In this document: positions 12,748-55,361 of the stretch, piece by piece | How the letters are laid out: every line of letters starts with the position of its first letter | Numbering within the stretch: the stretch's first letter is position 1 | Source: Pristiophorus japonicus | Taxonomy: Eukaryota | NCBI RefSeq assembly: GCF_044704955.1 | Contig: NC_091984.1 | Span: forward strand, 145,824,001-145,888,000 | Reading direction: 5' to 3' | DNA: 64,000 bases | Made by a program: the position numbers and the translations under genes | Notes under the pieces: model-generated | Told to the model about the DNA's origin: nothing | What the model saw: the letters and a program-made list of their open reading frames with translations, nothing else | Databases searched by the model: none

Positions 12748-13088
12748 TTTTTTTAAAATTCGTAGCCAATCTTTCCAATTCTTTGTCAAATCACAAACGC
12801 CAGAGGTCACCTTGCACACATCAAGGATCACTCTGCGCCAATGCTCTTAGCCAAAAGGCCGAGAGCCACTGCACTGTTCCTGGAAGTACTACACTACCAG
12901 GTTCGTGCCATGGAGGTGGATGGGTCAGGCCCCCCACACACCTCCGTGGAGGTGGATGGGTCAAACCACCCCACCCACCTCCTATTTCCAAAAAGTTTGC
13001 AGAACCACCTTCCTGATCCAGGGAGAACCACTTTGGGGTCATGGTTACTCCCCTGTCAGGTCAGTTACGCATGATCTTAGCCAAAAGG
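12748..13088 (-). mobile_element. U2/U1 snRNA-chimeric SINE, near full-length (copy S1)
   Basis: Minus strand: ccttttggctaagatca (U2 5'), actgacctgacaggggagtaaccatgaccccaaagtggttctccc (U1 5'), Sm-like ctttttgg, U2 3' acctggtagtgtagtacttccaggaacagtgca, second ctcggccttttggctaaga, tail, poly(A). Confidence 0.88.
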
Positions 13089-13097
13089 AAACCTTTT

Positions 13098-13333
13098 TTT
13101 TTTATTTATTTTTTTTATTTAATTCGTAGCCAATCGTTCCAATTCTTTGTCAAATCACAAACGCCAGAGGTCACCTTGCACACGCCAAGGATCACTCTGC
13201 GCCAATGCTCTTAGCCAAAAGGCCTAGAGCCACTGCACCGTTCCTGGAAGTACTGCAATACCAGGTTCGTGCCATGGAGGTGGATGGGTCAGGTCCCCCA
13301 CACACCTCCGTGGAGGTGGATGGGTCAAGCCAC
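13098..13333 (-). mobile_element. U2/U1-chimeric SINE, 5'-truncated (copy S2)
   Basis: Same 3' part and A-rich tail; 17-bp TSD ccaaaaggaaacctttt at 13081-13097 and 13334-13350. Confidence 0.88.
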
Positions 13334-13356
13334 CCAAAAGGAAACCTTTTACATCT

Positions 13357-14724
13357 TTTTTTTTTTTTTTTTTTTTTTATTTCAAAATATACTTTATTCA
13401 TAAAAAAGAATCTGTACAGTACATTCGATGGCATTTCATTACATTTCGCTGCGGTCAGCAATCCCATACAATACATCTGGGTGCCGACGGCAGTTTCGTT
13501 CGTTACATTTCTCGTTTTTCTGTTCAACTGCGATTCAGTACAATAAACAGGGTACATTGTGGTACATTTACACAAATTTCATTTCATGTGTTACATTACA
13601 GAGCCCGGAATGGGTGATGGTACATTTACATTTTTTTTCCTTTTCAAACTTGCATTTCATAACACACCTTACATTGTACATGGCACTACATTGATGTTTA
13701 CAGGTTTGGTGCTCTATGTACACAAAGTGTAAATTTCAAATACAAATACAGCCCGAGGGAGTTTGGTGCTGATTTCTGCCCCCGGGTTTTCCGTGGCGGA
13801 AGGGTTTTAGACTGTGGCCCTACCCCACCGTGCCTTTGCGGCGACTGCACCAATTTTCAGTGCGTCCCTCAGCACGTATTCCTGGATCTTGGATTGCGCC
13901 AGTCTGCAACATGCGGACGTGGTCATCTCCTTGTTCTGGAAGACCAGCAAGTTTCGGCAAGACCAAAGGGCGTCTTTGACCGAGTTGATGGCCCTCCAGC
14001 AGCAGGTGATGTCTGTCTCGGTGTGTGTCCCTGGGAACAGCCCGTAGAGCACAGAGTCCTGTGTTACGGAGCTGCTTGGGATGAACCTCGACAACAACCA
14101 CTGCATCTCTTTCCAGACCTGCGTCGCAAAGGCGCAATCCTGAAGGAGGTGGGTGACAGTCTCGTCCGCCCCGCAGCCGGCCCGGGGGCACCGTGCCGTG
14201 CTGCTGAGGCGTCGGCTGTGCATGAACACTCTGACGGGTAGGGCCCCCCTCACCGCCAACCAAGCTGCGTCTTGGTGCTTGTGTGTAAGCTTTGGCGATG
14301 AGACGTTCTGCCAAACAAGTTCGACAGTCCGCTCAGGGAACCACCCGACAGGGTCCACCGTCTCCTTCTTTCGTAGGGTGTCCAGGACCTTACGTGCTGA
14401 CCACTGTTTGATGGCCTTGTGGTCAAAGGGGTTTCTTTTGAAGAACTTTTCCACAAAGGACAGGTGGACAGGCATGGTCCAACTGGTGGGGGCGTTTCGC
14501 GGCAGCGTGGCCAGACCCATCCTTCTCAACAAAGGGGACAGGTAGAACCTCAGCACGTAGTGACACTTGGTGTTTGCGTACTGGGGGGCTGTGCATAGCT
14601 TGATGCAGCCGCACACAAAGGTGGCCATCAGGATGAGGGCCACGTTCGGAACGTCCTTTCCTCCACTGTCCAGAGATTTGTACATCGTGTCTCTGCGGAC
14701 ACGGTCCATTTTGGATCTCCAGAC
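13357..14724 (-). mobile_element. Tx1-clade (L1-group) non-LTR retrotransposon, 5'-truncated, with an intact 300-aa ORF2 C-terminus
   Basis: ORF 13807-14709 with zf-RVT motif WLAVRGALP..CPRAGCGADETVTHLLQDC; 3' UTR with AATAAA and long poly(A); TSD aaccttttacatct at 13343-13356 and 14725-14738. Confidence 0.88.
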
Positions 14725-15139
14725 AACCTTTTACATCTATTGCAGCAAGCAACTACTTCAATAAAATACCCAATCGAAAAGCTTAACTCCAAACTTGCCT
14801 GAATGATGTGTGCATCCCTTTAAGTGGTACGGTCAATGCTTCTGTGAGTCTGCTTACACGCTGGGTTTATCCGGTGTGGTTTAGGATCCAGCACTGAACT
14901 CCGTGCTCGGGTCAAAGTTCACCATGGTGAAGGTCAGTGTTGCACACCGACTGACGTCACAACTCCGCCATTTTACTTTGAAGGGCGATATTCCATAACA
15001 GCAGCACTGCAGGGCCTGGGAAAATGGAGAACACCGTGGAACCCACCACCCGCTGGCAAAAGTGCAGAGGCCACCCTCTTTGACCCACTTTTTGCCGGCA
15101 ATGTGTGGTGTAAAGCGCTTGAATTTTTGCGCAAAGCAA

Positions 15140-15600
15140 TAATGGAAGATCACGACCAATGCATCCAGTATCTCTTTAGCCACCTCTTTTAAAACCTTAG
15201 CATCTAGGTTATCAGCTATATGGGATTTATCAAATTTTACTCTCAATAATTTCTCCAGTACTGCTCCTTTACTAATACTAATTGCTTTAATTTCCTCATT
15301 CTCATTAGACCCTTGTTTCCCCACTATTTCCAGGATGCTTTTTGTATCTTTTTCTGTGAAGGCAGATACAATGTATTTGTTTAATATCCTTACCATGTTC
15401 ATATACCCCATTATAATTTCTCCTGTCTCTGCCTGTAAGGGACCCACGTTTACTTTCGCTGAGCTCTTCGTTTTTCTTGAACTATAGAAGCTTTTATAAT
15501 CCACGTGTATGTCCCTTGCTAGTTTACTGTCACATTGTATTGTGCCGGGGTCAATTCCCTGATCGTCCTTTGCTGAATTCTGAAATCCTCCCAAATCTCA
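15140..15600 (-). mobile_element. CR1 LINE fragment
   Basis: NVGPLQAETGEIIMG...VLKEVAKEILDALVVIF. Confidence 0.8.
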
Positions 15601-15700
15601 GGCTGACATTTTTGTCATCCAGAAATTCTCCTTCACCTGCGAAGTTCTGTTCTAACCATGGTTGTGTGCTTTCACTCTCTACATATGTCCGGTCAAAAGC

Positions 15701-16858
15701 CTGTTCCCAGCTCTCACACTCTATCTATGACCATCCACACTCTGTTCCCAGCTCTCACACTCTATCTATGACCATCCACACTCTGTTCCCAGCTCTCACA
15801 CTCTATCTATGGCCATCCACAGTCTGTTCCCAGCTCTCACTGTCTATCAATGACCATCCACACTCTGTTCCCAGCTCTCACTGTCTATCTATGACCATCC
15901 ACACTCTGTTCCCAGCTCTCACTGTCTATCTATGACCATCCACAGTCTGTTCCCAGCTCTCACACTCTATCTATGACCATCCACAGTCTGTTCCCAGCTC
16001 TCACACTCTATCTATGACCATCCACAGTCTGTTCCCAGCTCTCACACTCTATCTATGACCATCCACACTCTGTTCCCAGCTCTCACACTCTATCTATGAC
16101 CATCCACAGTCTGTTCCCAGCTCTCACTGTCTATCTATGACCATCCACAGTCTGTTCCCAGCTCTCACACTCTATCTATGGCCATCCACAGTCTGTTCCC
16201 AGCTCTCACTGTCTATCTATGACCATCCACACTCTGTTCCCAGCTCTCACACTCTATCTATGACCATCCACAGTCTGTTCCCAGCTCTCACACTCTATCT
16301 ATGACCATCCACAGTCTGTTCCCAGCTCTCACACTCTATCTATGACCATCCACACTCTGTTCCCAGCTCTCACACTCTATCTATGACCATCCACAGTCTG
16401 TTCCCAGCTCTCACACTATCTATGACCATCCACACTCTGTTCCCAGCTCTCACTGTCTATCTATGACCATCCACAGTCTGTTCCCAGCTCTCACACTCTA
16501 TCTATGGCCATCCACACTCTGTTCCCAGCTCTCACACTCTATCTATGACCATCCACACTCTGTTCCCAGCTCTCACTGTCTATCTATGACCATCCACACT
16601 CTGTTCCCAGCTCTCACACTCTATCTATGACCATCCACAGTCTGTTCCCAGCTCTCACACTCTATCTATGGCCATCCACACTCTGTTCCCAGCTCTCACA
16701 CTCTATCTATGACCATCCACACTCTGTTCCCAGCTCTCACACTCTATCTATGACCATCCACACTCTGTTCCCAGCTCTCACTGTCTATCTATGACCATCC
16801 ACACTCTGTTCCCAGCTCTCACACTCTATCTATGACCATCCATAATCTGTTCCCACCT
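15701..16858 (+). repeat. 41-bp minisatellite (ctgttcccagctctcacactctatctatgaccatccacact)n
   Basis: About 28 near-identical tandem units, period 41. Confidence 0.95.
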
Positions 16859-16899
16859 CACACTCCAGCAGTGCATGAGGCAAAACGTTTTAAAGGATT

Positions 16900-17270
16900 G
16901 CCCCTGGCCAACCTGAACTCACATCTTTCTCCAATTTCGCTCCGATCTCCCCTCATGCTCTCTCCGCCAACTTCCTGACCGTGTGACCACTTCCTGCTCC
17001 CTCGACCCTATTCCCACTAAACAGCTGACCACCCAACTTCCTTTTCTGGCTCACTTGTCAGCTGATGTGGTTAATGGTTCTCACCTCAGGTACTTTCCTC
17101 TCCTTGAAATCTGTGGCTTTCACCACTCTCCTCAAAAAACCGACCCTTGATCCCTCCCTTCCCGCCCCATCCTTGCAAACTACCGTCCCATCTCCAACCT
17201 CCCTTTCCTGTCCAAAGTCTTTGAACGTGATGTCATCTCCCAAATCCGTGCCCACCTTTCCCAGAACTCC
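16900..17270 (+). mobile_element. L2 LINE RT fragment
   Basis: LLKKPTLDPS and nucleotide pattern aactaccgtcccatctccaacctccctttcctgtccaaa (NYRPISNLPFLSK). Confidence 0.75.
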
Positions 17271-18689
17271 GGAAGATGATTTTTTGATATCATCGTTGCT
17301 AGATTTGGAATGAAGTGTCTGTGCTTCACTGTCGGTGTAATAGACAAGTTTGTGCGATTGTGAAAGTGAGCAGTGCTGGGGGGAATTGTGAAGTCATTCA
17401 CTTTGGTAGGAAAAATAGAAAATGCAAATTGTTGTTTAATGGTGAGGAACGATGAAATGTTGTTGGTCAGGGGGACTTGGGTCCGTATACATGAAATGCA
17501 GCAATGCAACATGCAGATACAGTGAACAATTAGGAAGGTCAATGATAAGTTAGCATTTATTGCTAGATGGGTGGAGGACAAGTGTAAGGAAGACGTGCTG
17601 CAATTGTACAGGGCCTTGGTGAGACCACTGTAGGATGATGGTTTCGTCCTGGATTAATTTGTAGCAGCCAAGAACAATTAGTTAACACTACCAGCTTCTT
17701 CTCAGAGTTCGACACTGGAAAATAATGACAAGACACCAATAATATAGTTTCCACTTAGTGAGGAGTCTTTACTGAGTCTGATCAACCCGTTACAACATTA
17801 CATCTATCAGTCTGTCCCTTGAACTAATTCGCTACGTTATAGTTACCAGTTCTTCAGTTCCCTGCGTGCTCACGACCGTCCCTGTGGTCAGCTGACGTGC
17901 CGTGATGTGGGTCTTCTGATGACTGACCGGGTCTCCCTTCTTTGACAGCAGCCGTGTTCCCACCCATCTTTGCTGAGCCTCTGCCTCAGTTTCCCTGAGC
18001 ACTCACGATCGACCCGATGGTCTGACAGGTTCATGGAGCACAGCTCTGATGACTGACCACGTCACCCCTCTCTGACTACTGTGGGCTGCTGTTACATCAT
18101 CTGTGTGTTTTGTGCCTGCTTTTTCTCAGGTGTTGTTTCCATGGTTACTGCCACTCATCGAATCCTTCCTTTGATCCATCGATGATCTATCTTCTGTGAG
18201 CAGACATTTAGCACTTTGGAAACTGGCCTATTGTCTAGTCTAGTGCTATCATTGACCTCACTGTGCTCAGTATTGGTGTTTACATTTCTACAAAGGTTTG
18301 GTCGCTATCAGTGTTTACATGTCCACAAAAGGTTTATTAAAGTTAATATTTTTTCCGTTGTGTTGGGGTTTCCCTTATGGTTACAGTTTGTGTGGTTTTA
18401 CATTTCCACAAAAGGTTTCTTACAGTCCTATTGTGTTGGGGTTTCTCTACAGATTAACATTGAGCATTTTAAACAGCAGTCTCCAGGATTTCTTACAATT
18501 ACTGAAAGTCAGTATTTACAGCTTTCATGTTTTAAGCATTTTATACAGAATGTTTAAAAAGGTTAATCACAGAGTTTGGTTTCCTGGGCCTTACATTGGG
18601 TTCAAGCCCGACACCACACCTGGAGTACTGTGTACAGTTTTGGTCTCCGTAACTGAGGAAGGATATACTTGCCTTAGAGGGGCTGCAAC

Positions 18690-19312
18690 AATGGTTCGAG
18701 GATCTCCTCAACCAAGGATCTGTCTTTGACGTGAGTGTCCTTGACTCCATCCCACAGCAAGCTGCCCACCACCACCTCAGCACAATCCCAGCCCGGCATG
18801 AGGATGAAAAGGCCATCCGACAACTGAAGAACAACAAGGCCTCAGGAGCAGATGGAATCCTTGCCGAAGTACTAAAGCATGATGAAGAAGTACTCTTGAC
18901 GCAAATCCATGACCTTATCTCTCTTACCTGGAAGGAGGAGAGCACGCCTGGGGATCTCAGAGACGCCATAATCATAATCATCTTCAAGAAAGCAGACAAA
19001 TCCGATTGCGGTAATTACAGAGGAGTTTCCCTGCTGTCTGTCACTGCAAAGAGTATCGCAAGAATCCTCCTCAATCGTCTCCTCCCAATGGCTGAAGAGC
19101 TCCTTCCAGTGTCACAATGTGGATTGTGCCCACTAAAGGACACAACAGACATGGTCCTCACCACACATCAATTTCAAGTGAGATGCAGGGAGCAGCATCA
19201 ACCTCTGTACATGGCCTTCTTTGACTTCACAAAGGCCTTCGACTCTGTCAACCATGAGGGATTATAGAGTGACCTTCTCAAATTTGGCTGTCCAAAAAAT
19301 TTGTCACCATCC
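18690..19312 (+). mobile_element. RTE-clade LINE RT fragment
   Basis: KASGADGILAEVLK..GDLRDA..KSDCGNYRGVSLLSV..SQCG..YMAFFDFTKAFDSV. Confidence 0.8.
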
Positions 19313-19319
19313 TGTCCTG

Positions 19320-20052
19320 AATATACTCAAAGACTGAGCCTCCACAGCCCTCTGGGTAGAGAATTCCAGAGATTCACCACCCTCTGAGTGAAGAAGTTTC
19401 TCCTCATCTCAGTCCTAAATGGCCAACCCCTTATTCTAAGACTGTGACCCCTGGTTCTCGACTCCCCAGCCAGAGGAAACATCCTCCCTGCATCTACCCT
19501 GTCAAGCCCTGTCAGACCTTTGTATGTTCCAATGAGATCACCTCTCATTCATTCAAACTCAAGAGAATATAAGCCCAGTCTACTCAATCTCTCCTCATAG
19601 GACAATCTCCACATTCCAGGAATCAGTCTGGTGAACCTTTGTTGCAGTCCCTCAATGGCAAGTATATCCTTCCTTAGGTAAGGAGAACAAAACTGATTCA
19701 CCAGGGCCTAATATAATTGTAGTAAGATGTCTTTACTCTTATGCTCAAATCCTCTTGTAATCAAGGCCAACATACCATGTGCTTTCTTAATTACTTGCTG
19801 TCCCTGCATATTAACTTTCAGTGATTGTTGTACAAGGACAGCCATATCCCTCGAAACACCAACAATTCCCAATCTTACCATTTAAAACATACTCTGCTTT
19901 TCTATTTTTCCTACCAAAGTGGATAACTTCACATTTCTCCACTTTATATTCCTTCCGCTATGTCTTGCCTGTTCACTTAGTCTGTCTATATCCCCTGGTA
20001 GTCTCTTTACATCCTCCTCACAACTTACATTCCCAGCAAGCTTTGTATCATC
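19320..20052 (-). mobile_element. CR1 LINE 3' portion
   Basis: MRGDLIGTYK..RMFPLAGESRTRGHSLRIRG..FFTQRVVNLWNSLP. Confidence 0.85.
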
Positions 20053-20590
20053 AGATTGATGAGAATCAGGAGATAGATTCCTGGGATGAGTGGGTTGTCC
20101 TGTGAGGAGAGATTGAGTAGATTGGGACGAGACTCTCTGAGCTTGAGAACAATGTGTGGTGATCTCATTGAAACACTTAAGATTCTGAGGGGGGTTGACA
20201 GTATAGATGCTGAGAGGTTGTTTCCCTGACTGGAGAGTCTAGAATTAGGAGGCATAGTCTCAGGATAAGGGGTAGGCCCTTTAAGACTGAGAGGAGCAGG
20301 AATTTCTTCAGTCAGAGGGTTATAAAACGTTGCAATTTTCTACCTAGAGGTCTATGGATGCTCAGTCGTTGAGTATATTCAAGGCTGAGATTGATAGATG
20401 TAAGGAGGCCATTTCGGCCCATCATGTCCACGCCGGCCGACCAAGAACTATCCAGCCTAAAAATAGATAGCGCGGGAAGGTGGAGTTGAGGTCCAACTTC
20501 AGCCATGATCTTATAGACCAGTGGAGCAGGCTTGAGGGGCTGTATGGCCTACTCCTGCTGCTATTTCTGTTGTCCTTAGCTTATGTTCCT
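20053..20590 (+). mobile_element. CR1 LINE 3' end fragments
   Basis: gatctcattgaaac...gagtctagaattaggaggcatagtctcagg and CR1 3' UTR tail. Confidence 0.75.
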
Positions 20591-21177
20591 ATGATTCTAA
20601 CAGTGCTCCAAGCAAATGGCCAGGAAGTCCTTTAATTTTATGAGGACTGGCAACTGGAATAAGTCAGCGGGCAAACATGATAGGGCAGTGGTATTTGGAA
20701 TGTACAAAATGTGGTCTCCAATACTTTCATTATTTGCATTGGTCAATATGTAAAAAGGGCACCAAGTATTGTATCATTCAGGTAGTCCCCAGACTGTGTC
20801 AGAATCAAAGAATTTTGTGAGATTGGGACAATGTTTAAAGGGGTGTCAAGGACAGTAGTCATTTAGGGCGTCCCCAAATGAGGTCACTATTTAGGCTCTC
20901 AGCGACAGTGAGTCAGCGTATAAAGGGATGCCGAGGACAGTAGACAGTCAGGGAGTCCTTGAACTGTATCAGTGTTAACAGGGGTTTATGAGAGTGTCTC
21001 AGTTTATAAAGGTGTACCAAGTATTTCAGAAATTCAGGGCAACCCCAGGCAGTGTCTCTATCACAAGACTTTACAGGAATTGTGCAGGAAATTGGAATTG
21101 AGGTAGAAGATCAGCCATGATCCTCTTGAGTGGCAGAGCAGGCTCGATCAGTTGAATAGCATGCTCCTGCTCCTATT

Positions 21178-23432: not shown

Positions 23433-23452
23433 TTATACTCTTATTATAAATA

Positions 23453-24780: not shown

Positions 24781-27700
24781 TGTAAAGTCCTATCCCCTCA
24801 GTACAGATTCACACGAGGCATGTCGTGAAGTCAAGGTCTCTCTGGACCTGCACCTTTATTTCACAGCTCTGGAATGCTGCACTTGCCTGAGACCTGTCCT
24901 TATATACCTGTCTCTTGCAAGTGCACCCCTGGTGGTTACAGGTCATATCTTATTACAGTCATGTATAGCATGTTAGGATACAGTTGTATATAATAATGTA
25001 AGATACATGACATCACCCTCCCCCAAGGTCTTATTGTCTTTATAGGTTCAATCTCTCAGGTGGTCGACTCTCTCGCGTGGAGCTTCTGAGTTGTGGTTCA
25101 GTTGTTTGCCTTGGTGTCTGTTTTTCTTTGGGTGTGGTTGCTGGTATCTCACCTGGGCTGTCTGTTTCGATTGGTGTGATTGTTGTTGACTCGCCTGGGC
25201 TGTCTGTTGGGATTGCCCTTTCCTCAGGTTGTTCCCTCTGTCTGTTCACCAGGTGTGGTGCGAGTTCCACATTGTAGTCTGCCTCTGGTTCCACAGTGTT
25301 GTTGGTAAATCTGCTTTTGACTTGGTCTACATGCCTCTGGCAGGTTTTGCCATTGTCCATTTATACTACCAGTAGCCTGTTTCCTTCCTTGCCCGTTACT
25401 GTCCCTGCAAGCCATTTGAGACCCCTGCCGTAGTTGAGGACAAACACTTTGTCCCCTATCTCATTCCATCTCCTCCTTGAATTTCTGTCATGGTACTCAG
25501 CCAGCTTACGGCGCTTTGCCTCAATGATTTCGTGCATGTCTGGGAGGATTAATGAGAGCCTTGTTTATCAAGTCCTTTTCATCAACAGTTGCGCAGGGAG
25601 CATCCCAGTCAATGAGTGCGGACGAGATCTGTATGCCAGAAGCAGTCACGACAGGCGACCCTGCAGCATGGGACCTTGGATTTTAAGCATGCCTTGTTTA
25701 ATGATTTGCACTGCTCTCTCTGCCTGGCCGTTGGAGGCCGGCTTGAATGGTGCCATCTTGACGTGATTTATGCCGTGGTCAATTATAAAATCTTGGAATT
25801 CTGCGCTGGTGAAGCACGGACCATTGTCACTGACCAATATGTCAGGGATTCCGTGCGTTGCAAACATGGTTGCGAGGCTCTCCACAGTGGTGGAGGTTGT
25901 GCTCGAGTTTAAAATGGTGCATTCGATCCACTTTGAAAATGCATCTACAACTACGAGGAACATTTTGCCCATGAATCGGCCCGCAAAGTCTACGTGCACC
26001 CGCGACCACGCTTTGGTAGGCCAGGGGCTCACGGGAGCCTCCCTTGGGGCATTGCTGAGTTGGGCACAAATGATGCACCTTCGGACACAGAGCTCCAAGT
26101 CCGCGTCAATACAAGGCCACCAGACGTGGGATCTGGCTATGGCCTTCATGAGAATGATCCCCGGGTGCTCGCGGTGGAGCTCTCGGACAAATGCCTCTCT
26201 GCCTCGCAGAGGCATGATGACTCGGCTGCCGCACATCAGGCAGTCTGCTTGTAGGGACAGCTCATGCATGCGCCTGTGAAAGGGTTTTAATTCCTCGGGG
26301 CAGGCATCGCGAGCCTCTGCCCAGTCACCGGTTAGGACATATCTTTTTACTAAGGATAACGTGGGGTCGCTGGCCGTCCAGGCTTTGATTTGGTGAGCCA
26401 TCATGGGCGAACCTGTGGACTCAAAGGCATTGATTGCCTTGACTATCTCACAGTCCTGTTCGTCAGACCCTTCCGTGGTCGCCAGGGGTAGCCTGCTGAG
26501 CGCGTCGGCACAGTTGTCTGTGCCTGGTCTGTGCCTTATGGTATAGTCGTAGGACGCCAGCATGAGTGCCCACCGTTGAATTCGTGCTGAGGTGTTGGTG
26601 TTTATTGTCTTGCTCTTGGATAGGAGGGACGTGAGGGGCTTGTGGTCGGTTTCTAACGCGAACTTGGCCCCGAAAAGGTATTGGTGCATCTTTTTGACAC
26701 CGTACACGCACGCGAGCACCTCCTTCTCTACCATTCCGTACCCGCACTCCGCCCGCGCAAGAGACCTGGAGGCATAAGCTATGAGTTGTAATTTGCCCGC
26801 ACTATTGACATGTTGTAAAAGGCACCTGACTCAATACGCTGATGCATCGCATGTGAGAACTAGCTTTTTACCTGGATCAAAGAAAGTCAAAACACTGTTG
26901 GAACACAGAAGGTTGCGTACCTTATTGAAGGCGCGTTCCTGGGCGTCCCCCCAAAACTTATCGCACCCCTTCCTCAGTAGCACATGGAGAGGCTCCAGCA
27001 GCGTGCTTAAGTTCTGCATAAAGTTCCCAAAGTAATTTAGTATCCCGAGAAAGGCACGCAGTTCTGAGACATTACGGGGCCTGGGTGCCAGGCGAATTGC
27101 TTCTGTTTTGGACTCTGTTCGGCGGATTCCATCAGTGGCAATCCTTCTGCCCAAAAATTCAACCTCGGGTGCGAGAAACAGGCACTTGGATTTCTTGACT
27201 CGTAGGCCTACCTGATCCAACCGCTTTAGTACTTCCTCCAAATTACAGAGATGGGAGTCGGTGTCCCTGCCCGTGATAAGTATGTCGTCTTGAAATACAA
27301 CCGTCCCCGGGATGGACTTGAGCAGACTCTCCATGTTGTGCTGGAATATGGCAGCTGCCGACCTGATGCCGAATGGGCATCGATTGCACATGAAAAGGCC
27401 TTGATGTGTGTTGATGGTGGTGAGTAGCTTGGATTCCTCGGTCAATTCTTGTGTCTTTTACGCAGATGTGAGGTCTAGTTTTGAGAAAAGTTTACCTCCA
27501 GCCAATGTGGCAAATAAGTCCTCCGCTCTGGGCAGCGGGTACTGGTCCTGTCGGGAGACTCTGTTTATGGTGGATTTGTAGTCCCCACAGATTTGTACGG
27601 ATCCATCAGACTTCATGACTGGGACGATGGGACTTGCCCAGTCGCTAAATTCCACAGGTGATATAATGCCTTCCCGCAGAAGCCTGTCTAGTTCGTGTTC

Positions 27701-29097
27701 AATCTTTTCCCTCATCACATAGGATACAGCTCTGGCCTTGTGATGGACCGGTCTAGCATCGTGTGTGATGTAGATTTTGACTTTGGCCCCTTTGAAAATG
27801 CCCACACCTGGCTGAAAGAGATGTTCAAATCGCTTTATAACTGTTGAGCAGGAGGTCCATTCCTCTAATGACATGGCGTGGATATCATCCCATTTCCAGT
27901 TTAGTTTTGCCAGCCAGCTTCTCCCCAGCAGTGCTGGGGGGTCTCCGGGGACAATCCACAGGGGAAGTCGGTTCACTGTCCCTTTGTGTATGACAGAGAG
28001 CATGGCGCTGCCGAGGAATTGTACGATTTCTTTGGTATAAGTCCTTAGTGTGGTGTCGACCCTTGTGAGTTTTGGTCTGTCTCTTTTATGTGGCCACAGT
28101 TTTCAAATTGTTGAGCGCCCATGAGAGATTGTGTCGCTTCCGTATCCAGCTCCATGTTGACAGGTATCCCGTTGAGTAGGACCCTCATCAATATAGGAGG
28201 CGTCCTGTTGTAGGAGCAGCGGCCATTGATTGTGTTGATCCACTGTACATCGGTGTCCCGGGTACTGTCCCCACCGTCTTCTGGTCCGCTTTCCGACCCA
28301 TCTGATTCGTATACCAGCCGAGTTGCCATTATTTTGCACATGCGGGCCAAATGCCCTGTATATTCACAGTTCCTGCAAACAGTCTGCTGAAATCGACATC
28401 CCATTGACGAGTGCCCACCCCCGCACCTCCAGCACAGACCGGTTCCATTGTTCAAAGTGTTGCCAAAGAATGAGCTGTGTCTGGCTGATCTCTCTTGAGC
28501 TTCTCTCAGTTTGTAGTTGATTGCTCGCATTGTGGGTTGATGAGGTGTGAACGGCCGTTCCTGTGGCCCTTGATGGCTTCTGGCGCCAATGATTGCTGTC
28601 GAGAGCCTGTTCGCCCGGTTTTGTCTGTGTGTGGAGGTAGCAGCTTGTTTAGTGCTGTGAACAACTTCTTCCGATATTTCGTTAGTTGTCGTACCTGCAT
28701 TGTAAATCAACCTCGTTTCTTCTTCCCCGACCAAGAATGTCTGTGCAACCAGTGCTGCTGCCTCTAAGGTCAGGTTCTTGGTCTTTATGAGCTTTCTGAA
28801 TATGCCTGCGTGGCCTATTCCTTCAATGAAAAAGTCTCTCAGCATTTCTCTCCTCAGTTCATCGGAGAACTCACATAAACTAGCCAACCTCCGAAGTTCT
28901 GCCATGAAGTCGGGTATGCTCTGGCCCACACAGTGTCTGTAGTTGTAGAACCTGTGTCTGGCCATGTGTAGGCTGCTCGCTGGCTTCAGGTGGTCTCTTA
29001 CCAGTGTGCTCAATTCTTCAAATGACTTGCTTGCTGGTTTCTCGGGTGCCAGCAGATCTTTCATTAAAGCGTATGTTTTCGAGCCACAGCTGGTCAA
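24781..29097 (-). mobile_element. Gypsy LTR retrotransposon (gag-PR-RT-RH-IN, 3' LTR 24781-25012), 5' end missing
   Basis: gag CCHC CWRCGGGH; PR MELDTEA; RT WASPIVPV, FSKLDL, PFGI, FQDDILI; RH LTCDASAY, LETDHKPL; IN HPG..C..C, VHVDFAG, SDNGPCF, NGQAER; PPT next to the LTR at 25013. Confidence 0.93.
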
Positions 29098-32000
29098 GAC
29101 TGGTTTTCGTCATAAATCTGGGTGAGATGGGGCAGATGGTATCACTGCACCGGTGGCCATGGCTACCTTCCCCCGACCCATTACTGCGGTTCAGAGTGCA
29201 CCCATCACGGTCTCAAATGTTTGGGGAGAGACCGACGGCTCGGTCTTTTGGGCTGGGACTGTGGGATTCTTTCCTACCCTGTCCTTCCAGGGATTCCTAC
29301 AGTCCATTCTCCAATGCCCATTCTTCCTGCACCCAAAGCAGTTACACTTGGTTTCGGAAGGGTTACCCCCTTCCTGGTGCCAATCTTTCTTTCCCTGACT
29401 GGGTTTTAACTCATGTACCTTTCCCTTGGGTGGGTGCTCTTCCCCCCTGCAGTTCCGATATGCCATGGTCAGTTGCCTGATCACTGTTTCCTCGGTGGCT
29501 TGGGGGTTCCTCGGGTCAAACCAAAGCTCTGCTCTGACTTTGATCCGGGGTAGGCTGTTCGCCACTATGCTCCGGAGCCATTGTGCCCGTTCGCCCGGTG
29601 TAAGGTTTGTCCGGTCGAGAGCCATACTGCAGGTTCGCTGATACACAGGCCACAGCCTGTCAGCGAAAGCCTGAGGGGTTTCTCCCACAAGCTGCACTGT
29701 CCTCTCCACTCGGGAGAAGGGACTTCCCTCATTTAGACCCATGGTCTCCAGAACTTCATCCCGGACATCCTCATATGTACCCCTGCCCTTTCTGCACTCC
29801 GCCAAAAGGGACTGGTACAGCTTGCTGTCCAGGGAGAAAAGGAGCAGTTTTACCTGCTCTGAGTCATCACATCCGCTAATCTCGGCTGCCTGTTCCACTT
29901 CCATGAAGTGGACGGAAGGGTCTCCCTTATGTGTAAGCTTACTCAGGTGGCTTACCATAGCCCTCAACTGTTGGGTAGTGTGGGGAACCACGAATTGGCT
30001 CTCAAGAACCACCGGTGCTCCACCCACAGGCGCGCTGAACTTTTGCTGCCGGACCGGACACATTGGTCCCGGCTCCGACCCTTTCAGTTCTGGCTCACCC
30101 TTCTCTCCCTGCTGCCAAACCGAGTTAAACCCCGGCACCACAGGTGGTGGTGGTCCGTACTCCCTGCCTGCCTGAGCAATTGTCCCTTGTCCCTCCTTCC
30201 TGCTGCCCAACCGAGTTGTTCCCCGGCGCCACAGGGGGTGACTGAACAGTTTTCTCCTCCTCTTCCAGGTCTGCCCAGGTCGTACCCAGACTTATGAGGC
30301 ACACCATGCCTCTTGCCCTGGACAGAGCATGGTTTAAACTTTCAATTTGCTGCTGGCAGGGACTGTGATAGCCCGACTCAAACCCCTTAGTGCTGGTTAC
30401 TCTGTAGGCTGCCTGGATGTCTTTGACGCTCTCCTCCTGCTCTTTCATTTGTCTATTAAGGCGAGAGTTCTCTTCTTGCAGTATCAATTCATTTTTCCTG
30501 GCCTCGGTGACCTGACACTGCATTTCATCCAACCTATTTCTGAACTTCTTCCCTGTGCAAAGCCTTTCCTCGTTGTGCTCATGTAACTCTCTCATTAACC
30601 TTTCCCCTATGATTGTTTCTGCACTAGACTGTTCCTCTGCCTCTTTCAGTTCAGCCATTAGTTTCTCCACTGTGGAATCTAAGAGTTGGACCTGTTTATG
30701 CAGACATACTAGCCAAATTGCCTTTTCCACTGCCTTTTTGTGAGTTTTACCCTCTGTCCAATGGGCTGCAGCATCCCCTGGATGCTCAGCACGCAACAGA
30801 TCGCATACCCACTTCTTTGTTACATTTACTCTTTTGACCACATAGGAAGCAATCCTCTCTTCCATTTGACTTCTTTTCTCACAACCAAAGTCTGTCTCCT
30901 CACACCCCTTTTGCCGCAGTCCTGCCACGGTCGCCATTATGTAGGGGGTAGTGTTTTGGTCAGGTTTCTCTGACTCCTTGGCATTTTCGAGGCGCCCCAC
31001 ACCCTGGATTCTAGACTGTGGACTGATTTGGGGGTTGTGAGAAACTGAGACAGAGTCAATTGGGTAGGATGCAAAACTGGTTTTATTGTGTTCAAACAGA
31101 GTAAAAAGGCACGTTTTTAATAATCACAATAATCAGGTATAAATAGGGAGAAATGGCAACTCAAATAATCTATATTTGGGAAGAACACATTACACATATA
31201 ACAGATTTTTAAAAACACAGTCGTCCCACCTCCCAAAATACTTATGCACTAAACCTGGAAGGGGAAAACACACACGAACATCAACAGGTAGGAACAGTAA
31301 GAAAAACCCAACCTCCCAGACCCACTAGCTAGCTTGGTTAGAACTCTGGGGTTTCAGGGACCATGCTCACCAATTCCCTTTTGACAGTTCCCACTCCGGG
31401 GTTCGCCTTAGTTGTCCTGGTCCAGTTCCAAACTCTGGCGTTCGCCTTAGTTGCCCGAGTTCTGTACCCCGGACCTCGTTGGGGACTTCAACCTGCGTCA
31501 CTTCTTCAGTTGGGCTGAGTCCGCTGATGTGGTAAGGTGCGTATTGGACTTGTGGGGTGAGTATTCACTTTTCCTTGGTCAGGGTAGTCTTAAAAGTTTT
31601 GTTAGGTAATGTTTTACCCCTTGGTAGTGTAGGACCAGCTTGTAGAGTGGAAAAATCTTCGGTTTTTCTTCGGTTTGTCGGGTTGGTTCCGGTTGACTGT
31701 TTGATTGGTCGCGATGGCCCGAAACTTTCCGATAGTCGCTTTGAAAACCTGTTTACTGTCGTGGTGCTGTCCTTCTGGGTTTTAGAGATTCCTTTCGCCG
31801 GTGTTTCGGGGTCCCACTTTTCGAGGCTGGTGTTAAACTTATGCAACGAGACTGCTACCTCAATAGTATCTCTAGAAGCACCCCAAACTGCCAGAACAGA
31901 CCTGCAATTACACTAAAACATCTTCATGCCAAATCAGTTCTTGGGTTTTGTTTGAACTGTTCTGTCCATTGATTTTCAAATGTCTCCTTTGTCAGTGTTT

Positions 32001-35896: not shown

Positions 35897-35987
35897 AGAA
35901 CAAGGCTGGTGAGGGCATCAAGGCTCTGATGCGACTGATAAAAGTCAAGATGAGGTTGCGGAGAGGTACACAGCTGCTGCTGGATAC

Positions 35988-41446: not shown

Positions 41447-41634
41447 NNNNNNNNNNNNNNNNNNNNNNNNNNNNNNNNNNNNNNNNNNNNNNNNNNNNNN
41501 NNNNNNNNNNNNNNNNNNNNNNNNNNNNNNNNNNNNNNNNNNNNNNNNNNNNNNNNNNNNNNNNNNNNNNNNNNNNNNNNNNNNNNNNNNNNNNNNNNNN
41601 NNNNNNNNNNNNNNNNNNNNNNNNNNNNNNNNNN
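41447..41634. other. Assembly gap (188 N)
   Basis: Run of N. Confidence 1.
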
Positions 41635-43682: not shown

Positions 43683-44290
43683 TTGAAACAACTCCGCCAA
43701 CAGTTGCAGCCAATTACAGAAAAGGAGGTTCCAAGCCAAAAGAGACGTAGCGTACCTGAAGAAATGGTAGGTGGTGGGTGGGGGGGCCTGATCCATCCAC
43801 CTCCATGGCACGAACCTGGTATTGCAGTGCTTCCAGGAACGGTGCAGTGGCTCTAGGCCTTTTGGCTAAGAGCATTGGCGCAGAGTGATCCTTGATGTGT
43901 GCAAGGTGACCTCTGGCGTTTGTGATTTGACAAAGAATTGGAACGATTGGCTACAAATTAAAAAAAAAATACCTGAAGAAATGGTACAGAAAAGGCGTCG
44001 GTTAAACACTCATTTTGTTGAGGAGGAACTTCCTGCAATTACTGAACCAATTGAGGATGTGAATGGCTTGACTGCACTGCTGAGCGAGTTGGGGAAGAAA
44101 AATGTGAATCCCGTTTCTGCTCTATCTATTTTGCAAGCGCAGAGGATGCCATCTGCATTTCCAAAAGGTGGAGAATTCAGAGGCTTCTGGCATGACATGT
44201 TACTTTCTTCGTGCAGTTGTGGATGGGGTTGAGTTTAAAGAAGGAATAGGTGTCAGCAAAAATAAATGGCCAAGAACAATTGTGCTGAAG
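43683..44290 (+). pseudogene. Captured ADAD1/ADAD2-like (dsRNA-binding domain) mRNA fragment, antisense to the LTR element and split by a SINE
   Basis: KNVNPVSAL..QAQRM /frameshift/ YFLRAVVDGVEFKEGIGVSK resembles the ADAD1 dsRBD as recalled ([36 protein letters not shown]); the frame runs through once the SINE is removed. Confidence 0.65.
43770..43969 (+). mobile_element. U2/U1-chimeric SINE, 5'-truncated (copy S3)
   Basis: U2 3' motif acctggtattgcagtgcttccaggaacggtgca, family tail, poly(A); 17-bp TSD tacctgaagaaatggta at 43753-43769 and 43970-43986. Confidence 0.9.
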
Positions 44291-48560: not shown

Positions 48561-48860
48561 CCACTGCTTCTGGCTCTTCATCTCCCCCAAGTGCACACCC
48601 TCACCCCACCTCAGCACTTTTGGAACATTCTCCATGATGTCTCTGCCCCTTGCACCAGGGAGTACATACCATATACTTTAACTCACACCCTTCACATGTT
48701 TCACTGCAATTCCATGTTACAATCGCTCTCCAGTAGACAGATCCAGCAGGAATAAAGCATCAAGTTCCCATCCGGATTCTGCAGTAAAGCTGTACATTTC
48801 ACCCAAACACTCTGAAAGGCCTAATGTGTTGTACCCTTTCTGTTTGTTTCCCATTTACAG

Positions 48861-49774
48861 CTAACGTGATGACGATTGTGATCCTGTCCCGGGGAAAGTG
48901 TGATCTCTCCGGATGTGTCACTCGCTACCTGGTGGCCATGGCAACAGCTGATCTACTGGTCATTATCGTTGACGTGATACTGTATTGGATTAATGATTAT
49001 TATTTCCCTCCTACCTTCCTGTTGATCACCCCTGTGTGCTCTGTCCAACGTGCCCTAAAAGATGCCGTCACAGACATTTCTGTCTGGTTAACCGTCGCTG
49101 TCACTTTCGATCGATTTGTTACCATTTGTTGTCAGAAGCTGAGGACTAAATATTGCACCAAGAAAACGGCCGCCATGGTGATAGGAACCGTGTCTCTGCT
49201 GTTCTGTTTAAAACCATTCCCTGGTACTTTGTAATGGAACCCTACTATACAATCGACAACATATCCTGGGGCTGCCGTGGTAAACTAGAGCATTATCCTG
49301 CAACTGCTTGGGTAGCATTTAGCTGGATTCCCCGCTGTGTCACCCCACTGCTCCCGATATTGCTGATATTGTTGCTCAATGCTCTGACTGTACGACACAT
49401 TTTGATGGCCAGCAGAGTCTGCAGGAGGCTGAGGGGCAGCAGGAATGATGTGAATCACAAAGATCCAGAGATGGAGAAGTGAAGGAAATCCATCATCTTG
49501 CTCTTCGCTATATCCGGCAACTTCATCCTGCTCTGGGTGGTGAACGTGATAGTTTTTTTACTCACCTGAATTACAAAAAATTATTATTCAACAGGTGTCA
49601 AAGACCCGCTGTTGATCACCGATCAAACCGCCTACATGCTCCTGCTCTTGAGTAGCTAGCTGCACAAACACGGGTATTTATGCAGTGACCCAGACTAAAT
49701 TCCGAGAGGAGCTGAAGAATGGGGCGAAATATCCACTGAATCAAATATTGAGATTAGTTAAACATGCACAATAA
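48861..49774 (+). pseudogene. GPR139/GPR142-like class A GPCR pseudogene, main coding exon
   Basis: Acceptor ccatttacag at 48860; ANVMTIVILSRGKC..YLVAMATADLLV..SVWLTVAVTFDRFVTIC..LLNALTVRHIL..SCTNTGIYAVTQTKFREELK; frameshifts near 49210 and 49657; stops at 49480 and 49567. Confidence 0.85.
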
Positions 49775-49826
49775 CAGGACAATGACCAGCATTAGACTTC
49801 TCTCTCTTAGACCGTCCCCCAGAGTT

Positions 49827-52800
49827 GAGGTGACTTGCTTCCACACTGAAATGGAGTATTTAAATAAACACTCGACACCAGGTCTGTGTTCGAAGATTCA
49901 AGCCGTCTTTATATTGCACCGGTGGGGAGGTGACCTGCTCCGGGTCTAACCAGGTCACTGTCCAACGATACATCAGTTTCAACAGCTTTTTATACACTTA
50001 AACATCTATGCTCAACCTCACGATTCATTGGCACCATTTGATTCGTTCAAAACCCATGTGCACAGTGGCTGATTGGTTACCTATTTTTATGCCTAGCTCG
50101 CATAACATTCAAAGTTTGTCTGAAGTTTGTGCTTTGTACATTTGAAGCCGTTACTGCTCCTTAGACTAGCCGTTTGCCAACCACATCCCGTGCTTGTGCT
50201 TCAGACGTTATTTTACAGGATTCTTTGTAGCTTAAGCCTGTCTGCGGTTTATTTGTATATGTCCTTTCAGCCATTGAAGGTAGTTTGCAGCTTGCATTTT
50301 TAACCCCTTAATTCCTGAAGGTTGCAATGTCCCACTTCAGTCCCCCCTTTTGGTACTTGGGTACCCGGCCCAAGTATACGAACCTAATTCTGCTCCATCC
50401 TGTGTCCCCTGCCCCATTCTGTGGTGATCAGCCACAGGTTTGGGGGGCCCGGGACGTAACCTACGTCTCAGAATATTTCAGGGTGCTCGGCTAGTAATTT
50501 CCGCTGTTCGTTAATCAACGACTTTGCTTTCCTTTTCCTGCATGCCAGAAATAACGCAATTCCCCATCCCACTGCTAATCCTAACTGTATAACCACCAGT
50601 ACATGAGAAGCTATAGAAATCCATGGATGGATATCCACATTCATTCCCCAATCCCATACATGATTCCACCACTGAGTGTCCTTTAGGGTTTCTTCGATGT
50701 CCTTCGAATGCTTTATGGTATCTTCCAAAATCTCCTGATAATGTACTTTTACTTTCTCAGTGGCCTTTTCCAATTGTATCAAATGTTCTTCGAGACGGGG
50801 AATGCTCTGCCAGCTGGGTATCTCGAATTGTTTCATTTCATCATTCCATTCTGGGTTGTTTAAAGTCCTCCTTTTGTGGGAATAGGTATCGATGGCCTAT
50901 CTGGACCACAGCTTTGGACGTAAAACAGAAATTAAGTTGTGGGATCGCACATATGACATTACCATGCTTGTACTCATTTACCTTGGTAGGGATGCAGTAC
51001 GTCCCATCATCCCGGGCTGCCACCTCAGTCCCTCCCTGACTAAGGGGGCTGATTTCCAGCGTGTAATTAACCGTCTGATTGACCCCGCACGCTGTACGTT
51101 GCCCTCCTTCTATGGTGTGTGCACACACTATCACATCTGAATATTGCGTGCAGCTGTCGATGTGCACCCCTTGGAAAGGGCCACTTATTTTCATCACATG
51201 GGGGGGGGGATATCGTAAAATAAAACCCAGGATTGACCTTGTATCTCGCCAATGTTCCATACTGTCAATTGGCCCAATTAACTATCCAAATTCATTATAT
51301 CTTCCCTTTGGCAGTTACATGTTTAACTCTATTCTTTCAGTGATATTTACTTGCCGATGCAAATAAATACTTAATGACATCCGTGCCCCAAGTCTCACAG
51401 TTTGGACTGGGGTAAAACAAACATTCCCGTTGCGATGGGACAAGTCAGGTTGGTACCGTACTGGTATTCCCGGTATAAGGTGCTGACACAATATTGATAC
51501 TTCCCTCTTTATACGGATCCTACAGGAAAATGCTGTCCTTCATGCTGCAGTTCCATGTTATCCCATCCCAATTAAACCTGCCTGCAGAGGCTGCAAGTTC
51601 TACCAGGTTGTAGAGGCAAATGTCCTGAGCTTGAGCACACCCAATTCAGCCTGGGGCTACACATATTTTTCCTATCCACCCGGGTTACATCTCCGGTCTT
51701 CATTGTATCCTACTACATTTTCTCAGGCATGATTGGGTAATACCCTACTATCTCTAACAGGGTGATGTCATTCTGTTCCTGTAAATGGCACTCGTGCCAC
51801 CGGGTACATCTGTACCAACCTTCTGACTTGCCACAGAGTCTCAGTAAGTTGATAAGTCGAACTTGCCCTCAGATCTCGATCAGTTACCCAGAAAGGGAGC
51901 TTTCCCTCTGCAATATGCTGCAGTTTACCTTGGGCTTGTTCCACTAACCAAGATCCATACATTACTTCCAGCCGTTTCATTGAAGATGATTTGTTCACCT
52001 TCTATAATCTGGTTTACCCCCTTTTTAGCATAAACCAGTTGCAACATATTAATCAGGCCTCACTGCCTTCTGTTATGATTCTCCCCAATAGTCTCGACAC
52101 CATTCTTGTCAAGGTACGATCAAGCCCATCACACCCCCTAAATTCAGTGCTGGTTGTACTGGCCCTCTCCCAAAATCCCTTGATCATTCTCCCATGTAGC
52201 CATGCTGTTTTAGGCTTGCACCACCCAGGTAGTCCCACTTTGGTCAGACTCAATATTACAGGTACCCACTTTGTGATGCACATCATGGTACAATATCATC
52301 TGAGTTGAGATTACCATTAGCCCAGTTGTTGGCCCTGGAATGTGTTTATGACAGACAATTTGCCTTTCCCACAAATCTGTTTATTCATTGGAGAAGGATC
52401 CTTGAGATGAGTTTAAAAAAAAACTCTACTGCTTTTACAACTCCTGTCCTTGCACACCTTGATATACTGGACGGTTAGAGTGGGATGATTACCATGCTCT
52501 GTAAATGTACCCTTATCCTATACCCTCGGCCATCCCTACTTCCACCATTCACAATTTGTCTCTTACTACATTGTGGGATTGGCGGGGTTTGCGAGGTATG
52601 TCTGTGTACAGGAGGTGGATCCAGATCTGGGACCCGAGGAGATTCTTCCACGTCCGTGTCCTGTCCACTTCCCTTTGGATCATACTGTACCTGATTAGGT
52701 GGGCGTATCCCTTCTTCCTCATCCCCCTGGAGAGGACGAAACCCACTCCCCATGTTCATAACCATTTCCTCTTGTCTCAGTACCTGTTGGTGAACTGAAA

Positions 52801-54307
52801 AAATGTAATCTGGTTAATATAAAACCATTTAATTTTCCTAGTTAACCGGGCTGCATATACCATGCGACTAACTTTATCAACAATATTATACGGTCCCTTG
52901 TTCCGGGGTTCAAAACTTCCACCCTGACATAGTTTTGTTCTATTACCTGGCCCCCCACCTCCCACTCCTGAGATTTACTCAGGGCCACATGTACTCGGTT
53001 ACGGTGGTGTGCCATCCTGATCCCTCAGGCGCAATCCACGAACCCGTTTCTTCCCGATGGTCACCAACTTAAAACAAAAGAAACAGAGAATCTCTGGTGA
53101 TTCTGCTTAAGAGCCTGAGGGGTTAATTTGTAATATGATCCAAAATTCCTTCTACCCCAGGAGCAAATATTCTCTTCAAATTAAGAAAATCTCCAATATT
53201 CAAAAGGTCTTGCCCACTGAATTAAAACAGAGTTTCGAAAGCCGACAAACACAGACACAATCAATGTCAACCTTCGTCCCACAGCTTGCAGCCTTTCCAG
53301 TTTAACCTCTCTGTGTGTTACACTTAAAGTAAGCTTAAAATAAACATTCAGAAACACAACTCTGCACACAATCGCATTTCATGTTTTTCTTCCCAGATAC
53401 ACATTGGTCAGAATTTTTTAAACCATACCAATTATTGATGTGAAATGCCTTATGTTCGAAACTAAAGTCTCTCCACACAATTTACAACAACCAGAATTTT
53501 ATCGGCCAGAATAAAAGTCTGATTTTTAATAGGTTAATTAATCTCAGTAATTCCAATCTTAAACTCTCCAATGCCACTTGGAAAAGGGGGAGGAGCCACA
53601 ATCACATGAAGGAGTATGCCTTCCCAAAAACTTTAAACACAGAAAAACACCAGAACAGTGAAGAAAAACATAATCTTCCCTTTTCTCCTTTTTATTGACT
53701 CATAACTATTCATTATTCCTTAAACCAGTTTCAATTTCTGATCCCCGTACACTCCAAATGCACCTCTGATTACCTTTTAAATGTGGTGAGGGTTTTTGCC
53801 TCTACCACCCTTTCAGGCAGTGAGTTATAGATCCCCACCACCCTCTGGGTGAAGAGATCTTCTCTAATCCTCCCCCCTTCTATGTTGTCATCCTGACGTG
53901 TGCTGTCACCATCACACCTTCTGTCGGTTTATTTCGTCACTTCTCAGTCAATAGTCTAGTCCGTCTACTTAATTCTCAATACGCGCTGGTCAATAAATGA
54001 GGACTTTCTCCTCTTTTTGTTTCTTTTCCGACTCCCACCACTTCCTTTGTGCCACAGGTGCATCGTCTGGTTTCCAATTTAGTTTAATCTTTATTTCAAT
54101 TAGTTTTCAATTTTTATCTGTTAGGTACAATGTCAGAGACCGCTCTAGTCCCAATTCGAGTTTCTCACTTCCCATGGGTAGATGTTGTCAGCTGTACATT
54201 CCTTAATTACTCGCCCTGAGTGAGACCGATACTTGCAACCCTATCCTCTTGGTTGTCAGTGGTACGCCCCGAACTTACTCCTCACAATTGAGACCGATAC
54301 TTGTAGC
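49827..54307 (-). mobile_element. Degenerate env-bearing retroviral-like element: 3' LTR about 49827-50339, env about 50468-52300, integrase C-terminus 52777-52965
   Basis: PPT aaaaggggggac next to the LTR; TM anchor WWNHVWDWG..HPWISIASHVLVVIQLGLAVGWG; Cys-rich ectodomain; GPY motif FEPRNKGPYNIVDKVS. Confidence 0.7.
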
Positions 54308-55361
54308 ATTTACTTCTCGGCCTTTTGGCTAAGATCTGCATAACTAACCTGACCAGCCACCATGACGTCCGGGTGGTTCCTCCCTGGTCAGGAAGGTATA
54401 TGCTTACATTTTTGTAAACAGGAGGTGGGTGGGATTGGTGACCCATCCACCTCCACGGAGGTGTGTGGGGGACCTGACCCATCCACCTCCATGGCACGAA
54501 CCTGGTATTGCAGTACTTCCAGGAACGGTGCAGTGGCTCTAGGCCTTTTGGCTAAGAGCATTGGCGCAGAGTGATCCTTGACTGGTGCAGGGTGACCTCT
54601 GGCGTTTGACAAAGAATTGTAACGATTGGATAACGATTGGACATGAATTTAAAAAAAAAAAAAAAAATTTACTTCTCGGCCTTTTGGCTAAGATCTGCAT
54701 AACTAACCTGACCAGCCACCATGACTTCCGGGTGGTTTCTCCCTGGTCAGGAAGGTATATGCTTACATTTTTGTAAACAGGAGGTGGGTGGGATTGGTGA
54801 CCCATCCACCTCCACGGAGGTGTGTGGGGGACCTGACCCATCCACCTCCATGGCACGAACCTGGTATTGCAGTACTTCCAGGAACGGTGCAGTGGCTCTA
54901 GGCCTTTTGGCTAAGAGCATTAGCGCAGAGTGATCCTTGACTGGTGCAGGGTGACCTCTGGCGTTTGACAAAGAATTGTAACGATTGGATAACGATTGGA
55001 CATGAATTTAAAAAAAAAAAAAAAAAAATACTTCTCGGCCTTTTGGCTAAGATCTGCATAACTAACCTGACCAGCCACCATGACCTCCGGGTGGTTTCTC
55101 CCTGGTCAGGAAGGTATATGCTTACATTTTTGTAAACAGGAGGTGGGTGGGATGGCTTGACCCATCCACCTCCACAGAGGTGTGTGGGGGACCTGACCCA
55201 TCCACCTCCATGGCACGAACCTGGTATTGCAGTACTTCCAGGAATGGTGCAGTGGCTCTAGGCCTTTTGGCTAAGAGTATTGGCGCAGAGTGATCCTTGA
55301 CTGGTGCAGGGTGACCTCTGGCGTTTGACAAAGAATTGGACACGAATTAAAAAAAAAAAAA
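54308..55361 (+). mobile_element. Head-to-tail trimer of full-length U2/U1-chimeric SINE (units start about 54308, 54668 and 55029; period 359)
   Basis: Each unit starts with cttctcggccttttggctaagatc (identical to U2 nt 5-28), contains the U2 3' stem-loop IV and ends in an A-run. Confidence 0.92.

Follow-up and report, generated by a model that had tools for sequence, protein, structure and literature searches.

A 64,000-nucleotide stretch of the genome of the shark Pristiophorus japonicus (NCBI RefSeq assembly GCF_044704955.1, contig NC_091984.1, positions 145,824,001 to 145,888,000 of the forward strand; hereafter the window, numbered from its first letter) carries a family of non-autonomous retroposons that combine fragments of the small nuclear RNA (snRNA) U2 and probably of U1. 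The unit is ~340 nt long and ends in poly(A). It is best read as a short interspersed element (SINE) of the SINEU type, moved by a long interspersed element (LINE) of the L1/Tx1 superfamily that carries an apurinic/apyrimidinic endonuclease (APE). The most likely partner is a Keno-like Tx1 element. We put the probability of this reading at roughly 0.75.

Copies, modules and subfamilies of the element

A blastn search of the window with one unit and two nhmmer profiles, built from the unit parts beside 54499–54534, recovered exactly six copies and no older fragments. Both methods thus bear out the six copies of a ~340-nt poly(A) unit, and their places, as proposed by an earlier first-pass annotation of this DNA. 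Full units measure 333–360 nt, are non-coding and carry tails of A8 to A19. The copies occupy four insertion loci (c1, c2, c3 and a trimer):

12747–13093, minus strand: c1, subfamily A, near full length; A8 tail at 12747–12754; the 5' end of its body reads GGTTTCCTTTTGGCTAAGATC; best U1-like segment at 13006–13067 (RF00003)
13094–13335, minus strand: c2, subfamily A, 5'-truncated at about unit position 132, inside the first hairpin resembling stem-loop (SL) III
43770–43969, plus strand: c3, subfamily A, 5'-truncated at about unit position 150; A10 tail
54309–54667, plus strand: trimer copy 1, subfamily B, full length; RF00004 at 51.8 bits; A17 tail
54668–55028, plus strand: trimer copy 2, subfamily B, 99.1% identical to copy 1; A19 tail
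55029–55361, plus strand: trimer copy 3, subfamily B, 97.2% identical to copies 1 and 2; tail 20 nt shorter; A13

The insertion point of c2 is the 5' end of c1, and the two copies are stacked on the minus strand. In the trimer, the copies stand head-to-tail and are joined by the A17 and A19 runs alone; copies 1 and 2 agree in their 5' TTT and in their tail. The only N run in the window (41447–41634) lies outside all copies, 2.1 kb from the nearest one. The wide span 12748–55361 is merely the envelope of dispersed copies, and no claim made here needs continuity across this run.

The U2 origin of the element is firm on sequence grounds. The Rfam model of U2 (RF00004) was run with Infernal and scores 51.8–54.1 bits in the three full trimer copies, against a gathering score of 46, which upholds the U2 modules recognised in the first-pass annotation. 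The alignment covers U2 positions 1–28 and the Sm region, then one of the SL III-like stems, and finally the stretch from SL IV to the 3' end; the model handles the second SL III-like hairpin as an insertion. U2 positions ~29–85, the part with the branch-point-binding GUAGUA and with SL IIa/IIb, are absent or replaced. Because this part is missing or replaced, and poly(A) tails and target-site duplications (TSDs) are present, the copies are not functional U2 genes. A second U2 SL I (model positions 7–26, 20/20) stands 3' of the U2 3' end in every copy, and it is followed by a tail of ~90 nt that has no match in Rfam. The modules of trimer copy 1 are as follows:

54309–54311, plus strand: three extra T
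54312–54336, plus strand: U2 head
54337–54397, plus strand: degenerate U1-like segment
54407–54418, plus strand: Sm-like site with a T5 run
54421–54454 and 54457–54490, plus strand: two SL III-like hairpins
54491–54538, plus strand: U2 SL IV and 3' end
54538–54558, plus strand: second U2 SL I
54559–54650, plus strand: unique tail
54651–54667, plus strand: A17

The expected snRNA hairpins form when the unit is folded, and the fold exceeds that of shuffled sequences, with z scores of −7.4 (a sister copy of trimer copy 1) and −4.2 (c1). The paired SL III-like hairpins are rich in GGTGG, and on their antisense strand the Prion_pknot model gives sub-threshold matches (31 bits, gathering score 39) at 12908–12959 and 13272–13323 on the plus strand and at 54443–54494 on the minus strand. 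These are taken as a by-product of the GGTGG repeats; like the sub-threshold miRNA matches on the same kind of hairpin, they were set aside as chance.

For the segment that follows the U2 head, a U1 origin is probable. The U1 model (RF00003) aligns to c1 at 12949–13067 of the minus strand with 30.6 bits and an E value of 9e-6, its gathering score being 69.5. When the 5' segment of c1 was searched alone (13006–13067, minus strand; 67-nt query), U1 was the sole significant family of 4227, with 24.3 bits and an E value of 4.5e-5. The alignment begins at U1 position 1, and both helices of SL I are preserved in it by way of changed pairs; the U2 model leaves the same stretch unaligned as a 56-nt insertion. 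The best explanation of the whole unit is the order U2 nt 1–~35; U1 5' end and SL I (~nt 1–60, with the U1 assignment probable); U2 3' half from the Sm site, with a duplicated SL III-like hairpin; a second U2 SL I; and an unrelated ~90-nt tail ending in A's. The Sm site and the hairpin that follows it could, by their sequence, come from either U1 or U2.

Alignment divides the copies into two subfamilies with shared diagnostic indels. Subfamily A (c1, c2 and c3) is 95–96% alike and has in common a TTTGTGA insert and the tail GGAACGATTGGCTACGAATT; subfamily B, the trimer, is 97–99% alike. The two are 92–94% alike over the 3' two thirds, and c1 as a whole is 85% identical to the B unit by blastn. 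The U1-like and Sm segment stands apart, as it is only 70.6% identical between the subfamilies (54337–54420 versus 13000–13070), whereas the other modules reach 91–100%. The trimer segment may thus be either a degenerate or a replaced form, and its divergence could reflect module replacement, as in the SINEU-2 subfamilies, or local decay.

The module junctions are identical across all copies, which means that the mosaic itself was the copied unit and that the copies are not independent template-switch chimeras. Segmental duplication was considered as the source of the dispersed copies and rejected, since the flanks are not alike and TSDs occur. The family was described from the outset as retroposed rather than locally duplicated, and this description stands, given the poly(A) tails, the 5' truncations of c2 and c3, the TSDs, the four loci, the shared junctions and the two subfamilies. 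The recent activity claimed for it is likewise in keeping with the data, for the family looks young: the trimer copies are 97–99% alike and the TSDs are perfect. Unit 31-mers (query 54667–55026) occur in seven runs of P. japonicus from three studies, all of them contigs and none recorded as RNA. One run of a second organism, again of contigs, contains 29% of the sampled unit 31-mers (share 0.29), which hints at a family common to a related species. A pattern specific to the tail gave 0 matches in metagenome contigs.

Insertion marks, target sites and the stacked LINE

The copies were made by target-primed reverse transcription, as their poly(A) tails, 5' truncation and perfect TSDs of 10–17 bp show. 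The TSD of c3 is a perfect 17-bp repeat, TACCTGAAGAAATGGTA, at 43753–43769 and 43970–43986. That of c2, (AAAA)GGTTTCCTTTT, is perfect over 11–15 bp (plus-strand coordinates 13083–13097 and 13336–13350) and starts at T/AAAA, where the slash, here and below, marks the point of insertion or cleavage. The duplication of c1, (A)GATGTAAAAG, is perfect over 10–11 bp. No TSD was found at the flanks of the trimer. TSDs of 14–17 bp, as had been claimed, are therefore seen at two of the four insertion loci; at c1 they are shorter and at the trimer there are none. Neither an empty site nor a second copy of any insertion flank is present in the window.

A LINE is stacked with c1 and c2:

13356–14727, minus strand: young LINE of L1/Tx1 type, 5'-truncated, poly(A); 307-aa open C-terminus of open reading frame (ORF) 2, 450-nt 3' untranslated region (UTR), A23

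The 307-aa frame contains a zf-RVT domain (Pfam, 5.8e-10). Its homologues are predicted proteins in many sharks and rays (70–76% identical) and amphibian LINE proteins with APE endonuclease, reverse transcriptase and zf-RVT domains (37–45% identical). The sequence (A)GATGTAAAAG flanks both c1 and this LINE, and its exact 10-mer occurs three times, at plus-strand positions 12737–12746, 13346–13355 and 14728–14737. As the third copy lies at the 5' end of the LINE, the LINE and c1 used one target and share the same TSD, and c1 stands directly after the A23 tail of the LINE. Chondrichthyans have Tx1 elements and no full L1, according to the whale-shark genome paper. From this literature we infer that the LINE, which is itself typed to the L1/Tx1 superfamily, may belong to Tx1. 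Beside it, at 14884–15597 on the minus strand, lies a 238-aa open stretch with no Pfam match that looks by eye like the linker between endonuclease and reverse transcriptase of CR1/L2-type elements.

The target sites suggest a more specific partner. Cleavage of U2 genes by Keno, of the Tx1 clade, and by Utopia leaves U2 nt 39 as the first base of the 3' flank, and families of U2-targeting LINEs with relaxed specificity land at U2-like sites such as TGTAGTATCTG (PMC4640811). In the Rfam consensus of U2, the Keno/Utopia site reads GUAGUA/UCUG. The trimer is bordered by the following flanks:

54299–54308, plus strand: trimer 5' flank, ACTTGTAGCA
55362–55369, plus strand: trimer 3' flank, TCTGACCA

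Joined, they give TGTAGCA/TCTG, which is identical to U2 nt 32–42 at 10 of 11 positions and has its break at U2 38/39. Each of the four sites was compared with U2 29–46, and P values were calculated against the background of all window positions:

Trimer site, ACTTGTAGCA/TCTGACCA: 12/18 (10/11 in the core), P 2.3e-4
c2 site, best of five registers: 10/18, P 0.006 in that register, uncorrected for the choice among five
LINE/c1 site, GCAATA/GATG: 8/18, P 0.06
c3 site, GTAGCG/T, same register: 7/18, P 0.15

The upstream flank of c3 reads GTAGCG (43747–43752) and is followed by T; in the window, GTAGYRT has a frequency of 1.3e-4 per position. With no more than four sites, their resemblance to U2 speaks well, though not conclusively, for a Keno-like endonuclease biased towards the U2 site. 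Within the trimer 5' flank, TGAGACCGATACTTG occurs twice, at 54222–54240 and 54288–54306, ~66 bp apart, and the second copy supplies the U2-like TTGTAGCA of the flank. It was also considered whether the internal U2/U1 junction of the unit might itself be a Keno site. This was not adopted, as the U2 head of c1 seems to reach ~nt 35, near but not at 38/39.

The trimer junction, and partly that of c3, mimics the U2 38/39 cut of Keno and Utopia, and tandem insertion at one site is common to both systems. The shark element differs in being non-coding and in being inserted outside U2 genes. No Keno-type LINE was identified in the window, where the stacked LINE is typed to the L1/Tx1 superfamily only.

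Counter-evidence and alternative explanations

Several observations weigh against the reading given at the outset. There are four insertion sites only, and the trimer site alone is individually significant for its likeness to U2. Protein searches with the LINE returned unnamed shark and amphibian LINE proteins, with zf-RVT clusters alone from the ESM Atlas, and placed it in neither Tx1 nor Keno. The tail of the SINE has no similarity to the 3' UTR of the stacked LINE, the single LINE compared, beyond the A run, so that recognition would need to go through poly(A). If the LINE was inserted first, c1 may have entered through a nick in its A23, and then the second nick alone coincides. As for the U1-like segment, its score is well under the gathering score and comes from c1 only, and the trimer copies give no U1 match even when the segment is searched alone. 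The U1 assignment of the first-pass annotation is retained as probable: in c1 the match is significant (24–31 bits, E ~1e-5) but below gathering, and subfamily B gives none.

Of the alternatives, the one that survives best concerns the partner. A generic poly(A)-dependent enzyme of L1 type, with no preference for U2-like sites, would produce the stacking and the trimer from TTTT/A nicks in poly(A), or the trimer could be due to unequal crossing-over. We regard this as possible, though somewhat unlikely. It fits the T/AAAA start of the c2 TSD and the position of c1 behind an A23 run, as well as the trimer, whose copies are joined by A runs only and of which the first two, alike in 5' TTT and tail, are 99.1% identical; on present evidence, the trimer may have arisen either by serial insertion at one site or by unequal crossing-over. 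Three of the four sites are, moreover, individually non-significant. However, no A-rich sequence borders the trimer on the outside; its flanks agree with the U2 cut site at 10 of 11 positions, in the exact register. The c3 nick, G/T, is not L1-like, and its GTAG stands in the same register. The reported lack of full L1 elements in chondrichthyans also argues against such an enzyme.

A second alternative accepts the retroposon and its U2 parts but denies the U1 contribution. The segment after the head would then be a diverged U2 SL IIa/IIb or an unrelated hairpin with a chance likeness to U1, and the element would be a rearranged U2 similar to SINEU-3. The sub-gathering match confined to c1 and the unmatched trimer copies speak for it, and Infernal also aligns ACUGACCU of c1 to U2 39–46, within a weak 19-bit U2 alignment. 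Nevertheless, it appears unlikely, because the isolated 67-nt segment has U1 as its sole significant family of 4227 (E 4.5e-5), because the alignment starts at U1 position 1 with both SL I helices kept through changed pairs, and because the U2 model passes over the stretch as a 56-nt insertion.

The weakest alternative holds that one expressed gene for a chimeric snRNA-like transcript, a variant Sm-class RNA, gave rise to all copies as processed pseudogenes, with no self-propagating SINE involved. This would suit the retained Sm-like site and snRNA hairpins, a fold far better than that of shuffles, and the plausibility of a master gene with an external snRNA promoter where no internal promoter exists, but it is improbable in view of two subfamilies with distinct heads and tails, a non-snRNA tail with a templated A-rich end unlike snRNA 3' ends, and the absence of such a gene from the window by Rfam; in practice, it differs from a SINE with few masters only in degree.

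Surroundings, relation to crocodilian SINEU and possible life cycle

The window probably lies in an immunoglobulin light-chain cluster. Its other features include an open stretch at 60629–61003 (plus strand) with an immunoglobulin C1-set domain (Pfam, 2e-10) and a light-chain-constant-like motif, and the pol region of a long-terminal-repeat retrotransposon at 25646–31000 (minus strand), with ORFs that encode RVT_1, RNase H and integrase domains. A 161-aa open stretch (55351–55833, plus strand) adjoins the 3' end of the trimer; it contains a hydrophobic segment, lacks a convincing Pfam match and resembles, by eye only, the transmembrane region of an env protein. It is followed by an integrase-core remnant at 56296–57060 (plus strand; rve, E 3e-4).

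The element joins U2 and probably U1 fragments in a manner already described. The SINEU families of crocodilians carry serial U1 and U2 heads, and one family consists of two U2 pieces (Kojima 2015; PMC4494074). They have poly(A) tails and internal oligo-T runs that argue against transcription by RNA polymerase III (Pol III). Tandem copies sandwich TSDs, and copies are stacked with Tx1 LINEs (PMC4494074). The proposed partners are Keno-related Tx1 elements, some of which themselves bear U1 or U2 heads, and no SINEU was found outside crocodilians (PMC4494074). These are the only reports of snRNA-headed SINEs in the literature searched, as the first-pass annotation had noted for crocodilians; no later record, whether from sharks or from another taxon, was found in it.

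By design, the shark element is of the SINEU type, point for point, the comparison with the crocodilian families being by description only. The new SINE class proposed in the first-pass annotation is consequently withdrawn, since the design was already published as SINEU (PMC4494074). Both are short poly(A) retroposons whose 5' part is a series of snRNA fragments, from U1 and U2 in crocodilians and from U2 and probably U1 in the shark. Both include a family of two U2 pieces with an internal deletion and show internal oligo-T, copies that are often 5'-truncated, tandem copies and stacking with LINEs. For each, mobilisation by Keno-related Tx1 LINEs is proposed. The differences lie in the host, which here is an elasmobranch, and in the order of the modules, U2-U1-U2(3' half)-U2 plus a tail without known relation. 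The shark element also has a duplicated SL III-like hairpin, and its target looks like the U2 gene site, whereas that of the crocodilian elements is Mariner-N4_AMi.

The chimeras of snRNA formed by L1 (U6-L1 and the like) and the snRNA retropseudogenes of mammals are also comparable, in that template switching fuses snRNA with other RNA and the inserted product has TSDs and poly(A). They are, however, one-off events with variable junctions, while the shark copies share junctions and form subfamilies.

The life cycle of the element may be pictured as follows. The enzyme would be supplied in trans by a poly(A) LINE of APE type from the L1/Tx1 superfamily, most likely a Keno-like Tx1 with a relaxed preference for the U2 site GUAGUA/UCUG. 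Such a preference would account for insertions that pile up at one site and for head-to-tail arrays. The mosaic may have gained its snRNA pieces one after another at the 5' end, through template switching or through co-transcription from snRNA genes; such stepwise growth has been proposed for crocodilian SINEU-1 (PMC4494074). Transcription would not depend on Pol III, as the unit contains an internal T5 run (54409–54413, with a counterpart in c1) and Rfam gave no match to tRNA, 7SL or 5S, and hence no head of a classical Pol III SINE. For SINEU, transcription and head gain were left unresolved (PMC4494074, Discussion).

A further step can be offered as a speculation that we consider rather doubtful. 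Master copies might reside inside U2 genes (and, at one time or another, inside U1 genes), close to the Keno cut site or exactly at it, where they would be read from the snRNA promoter by RNA polymerase II (Pol II). Each round would add a fresh head of U2 nt 1–~35, and the relaxed endonuclease of the partner would scatter copies to U2-like sites such as GTAGCA/TCTG. Masters in snRNA genes would explain why the unit lacks an internal promoter and why its snRNA heads are serial. If this is true, the element would exemplify a promoter-capture life cycle of a non-autonomous retroposon, recently active in a living shark lineage.

For annotation, the copies serve as a warning that Rfam U2 matches in shark genomes can be retroposons rather than U2 genes. 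With copies 97–99% alike, perfect TSDs and insertion sites reminiscent of the Keno target in U2, the family is tractable for the study of its masters, its transcription starts and its LINE partner. In the literature searched, Pol II snRNA heads are reported for no SINE-like retroposons other than SINEU, which in turn is known from crocodilians only. With a young elasmobranch family built in the same way, this route to a retroposon would be shown to have arisen, or persisted, in a second vertebrate class.

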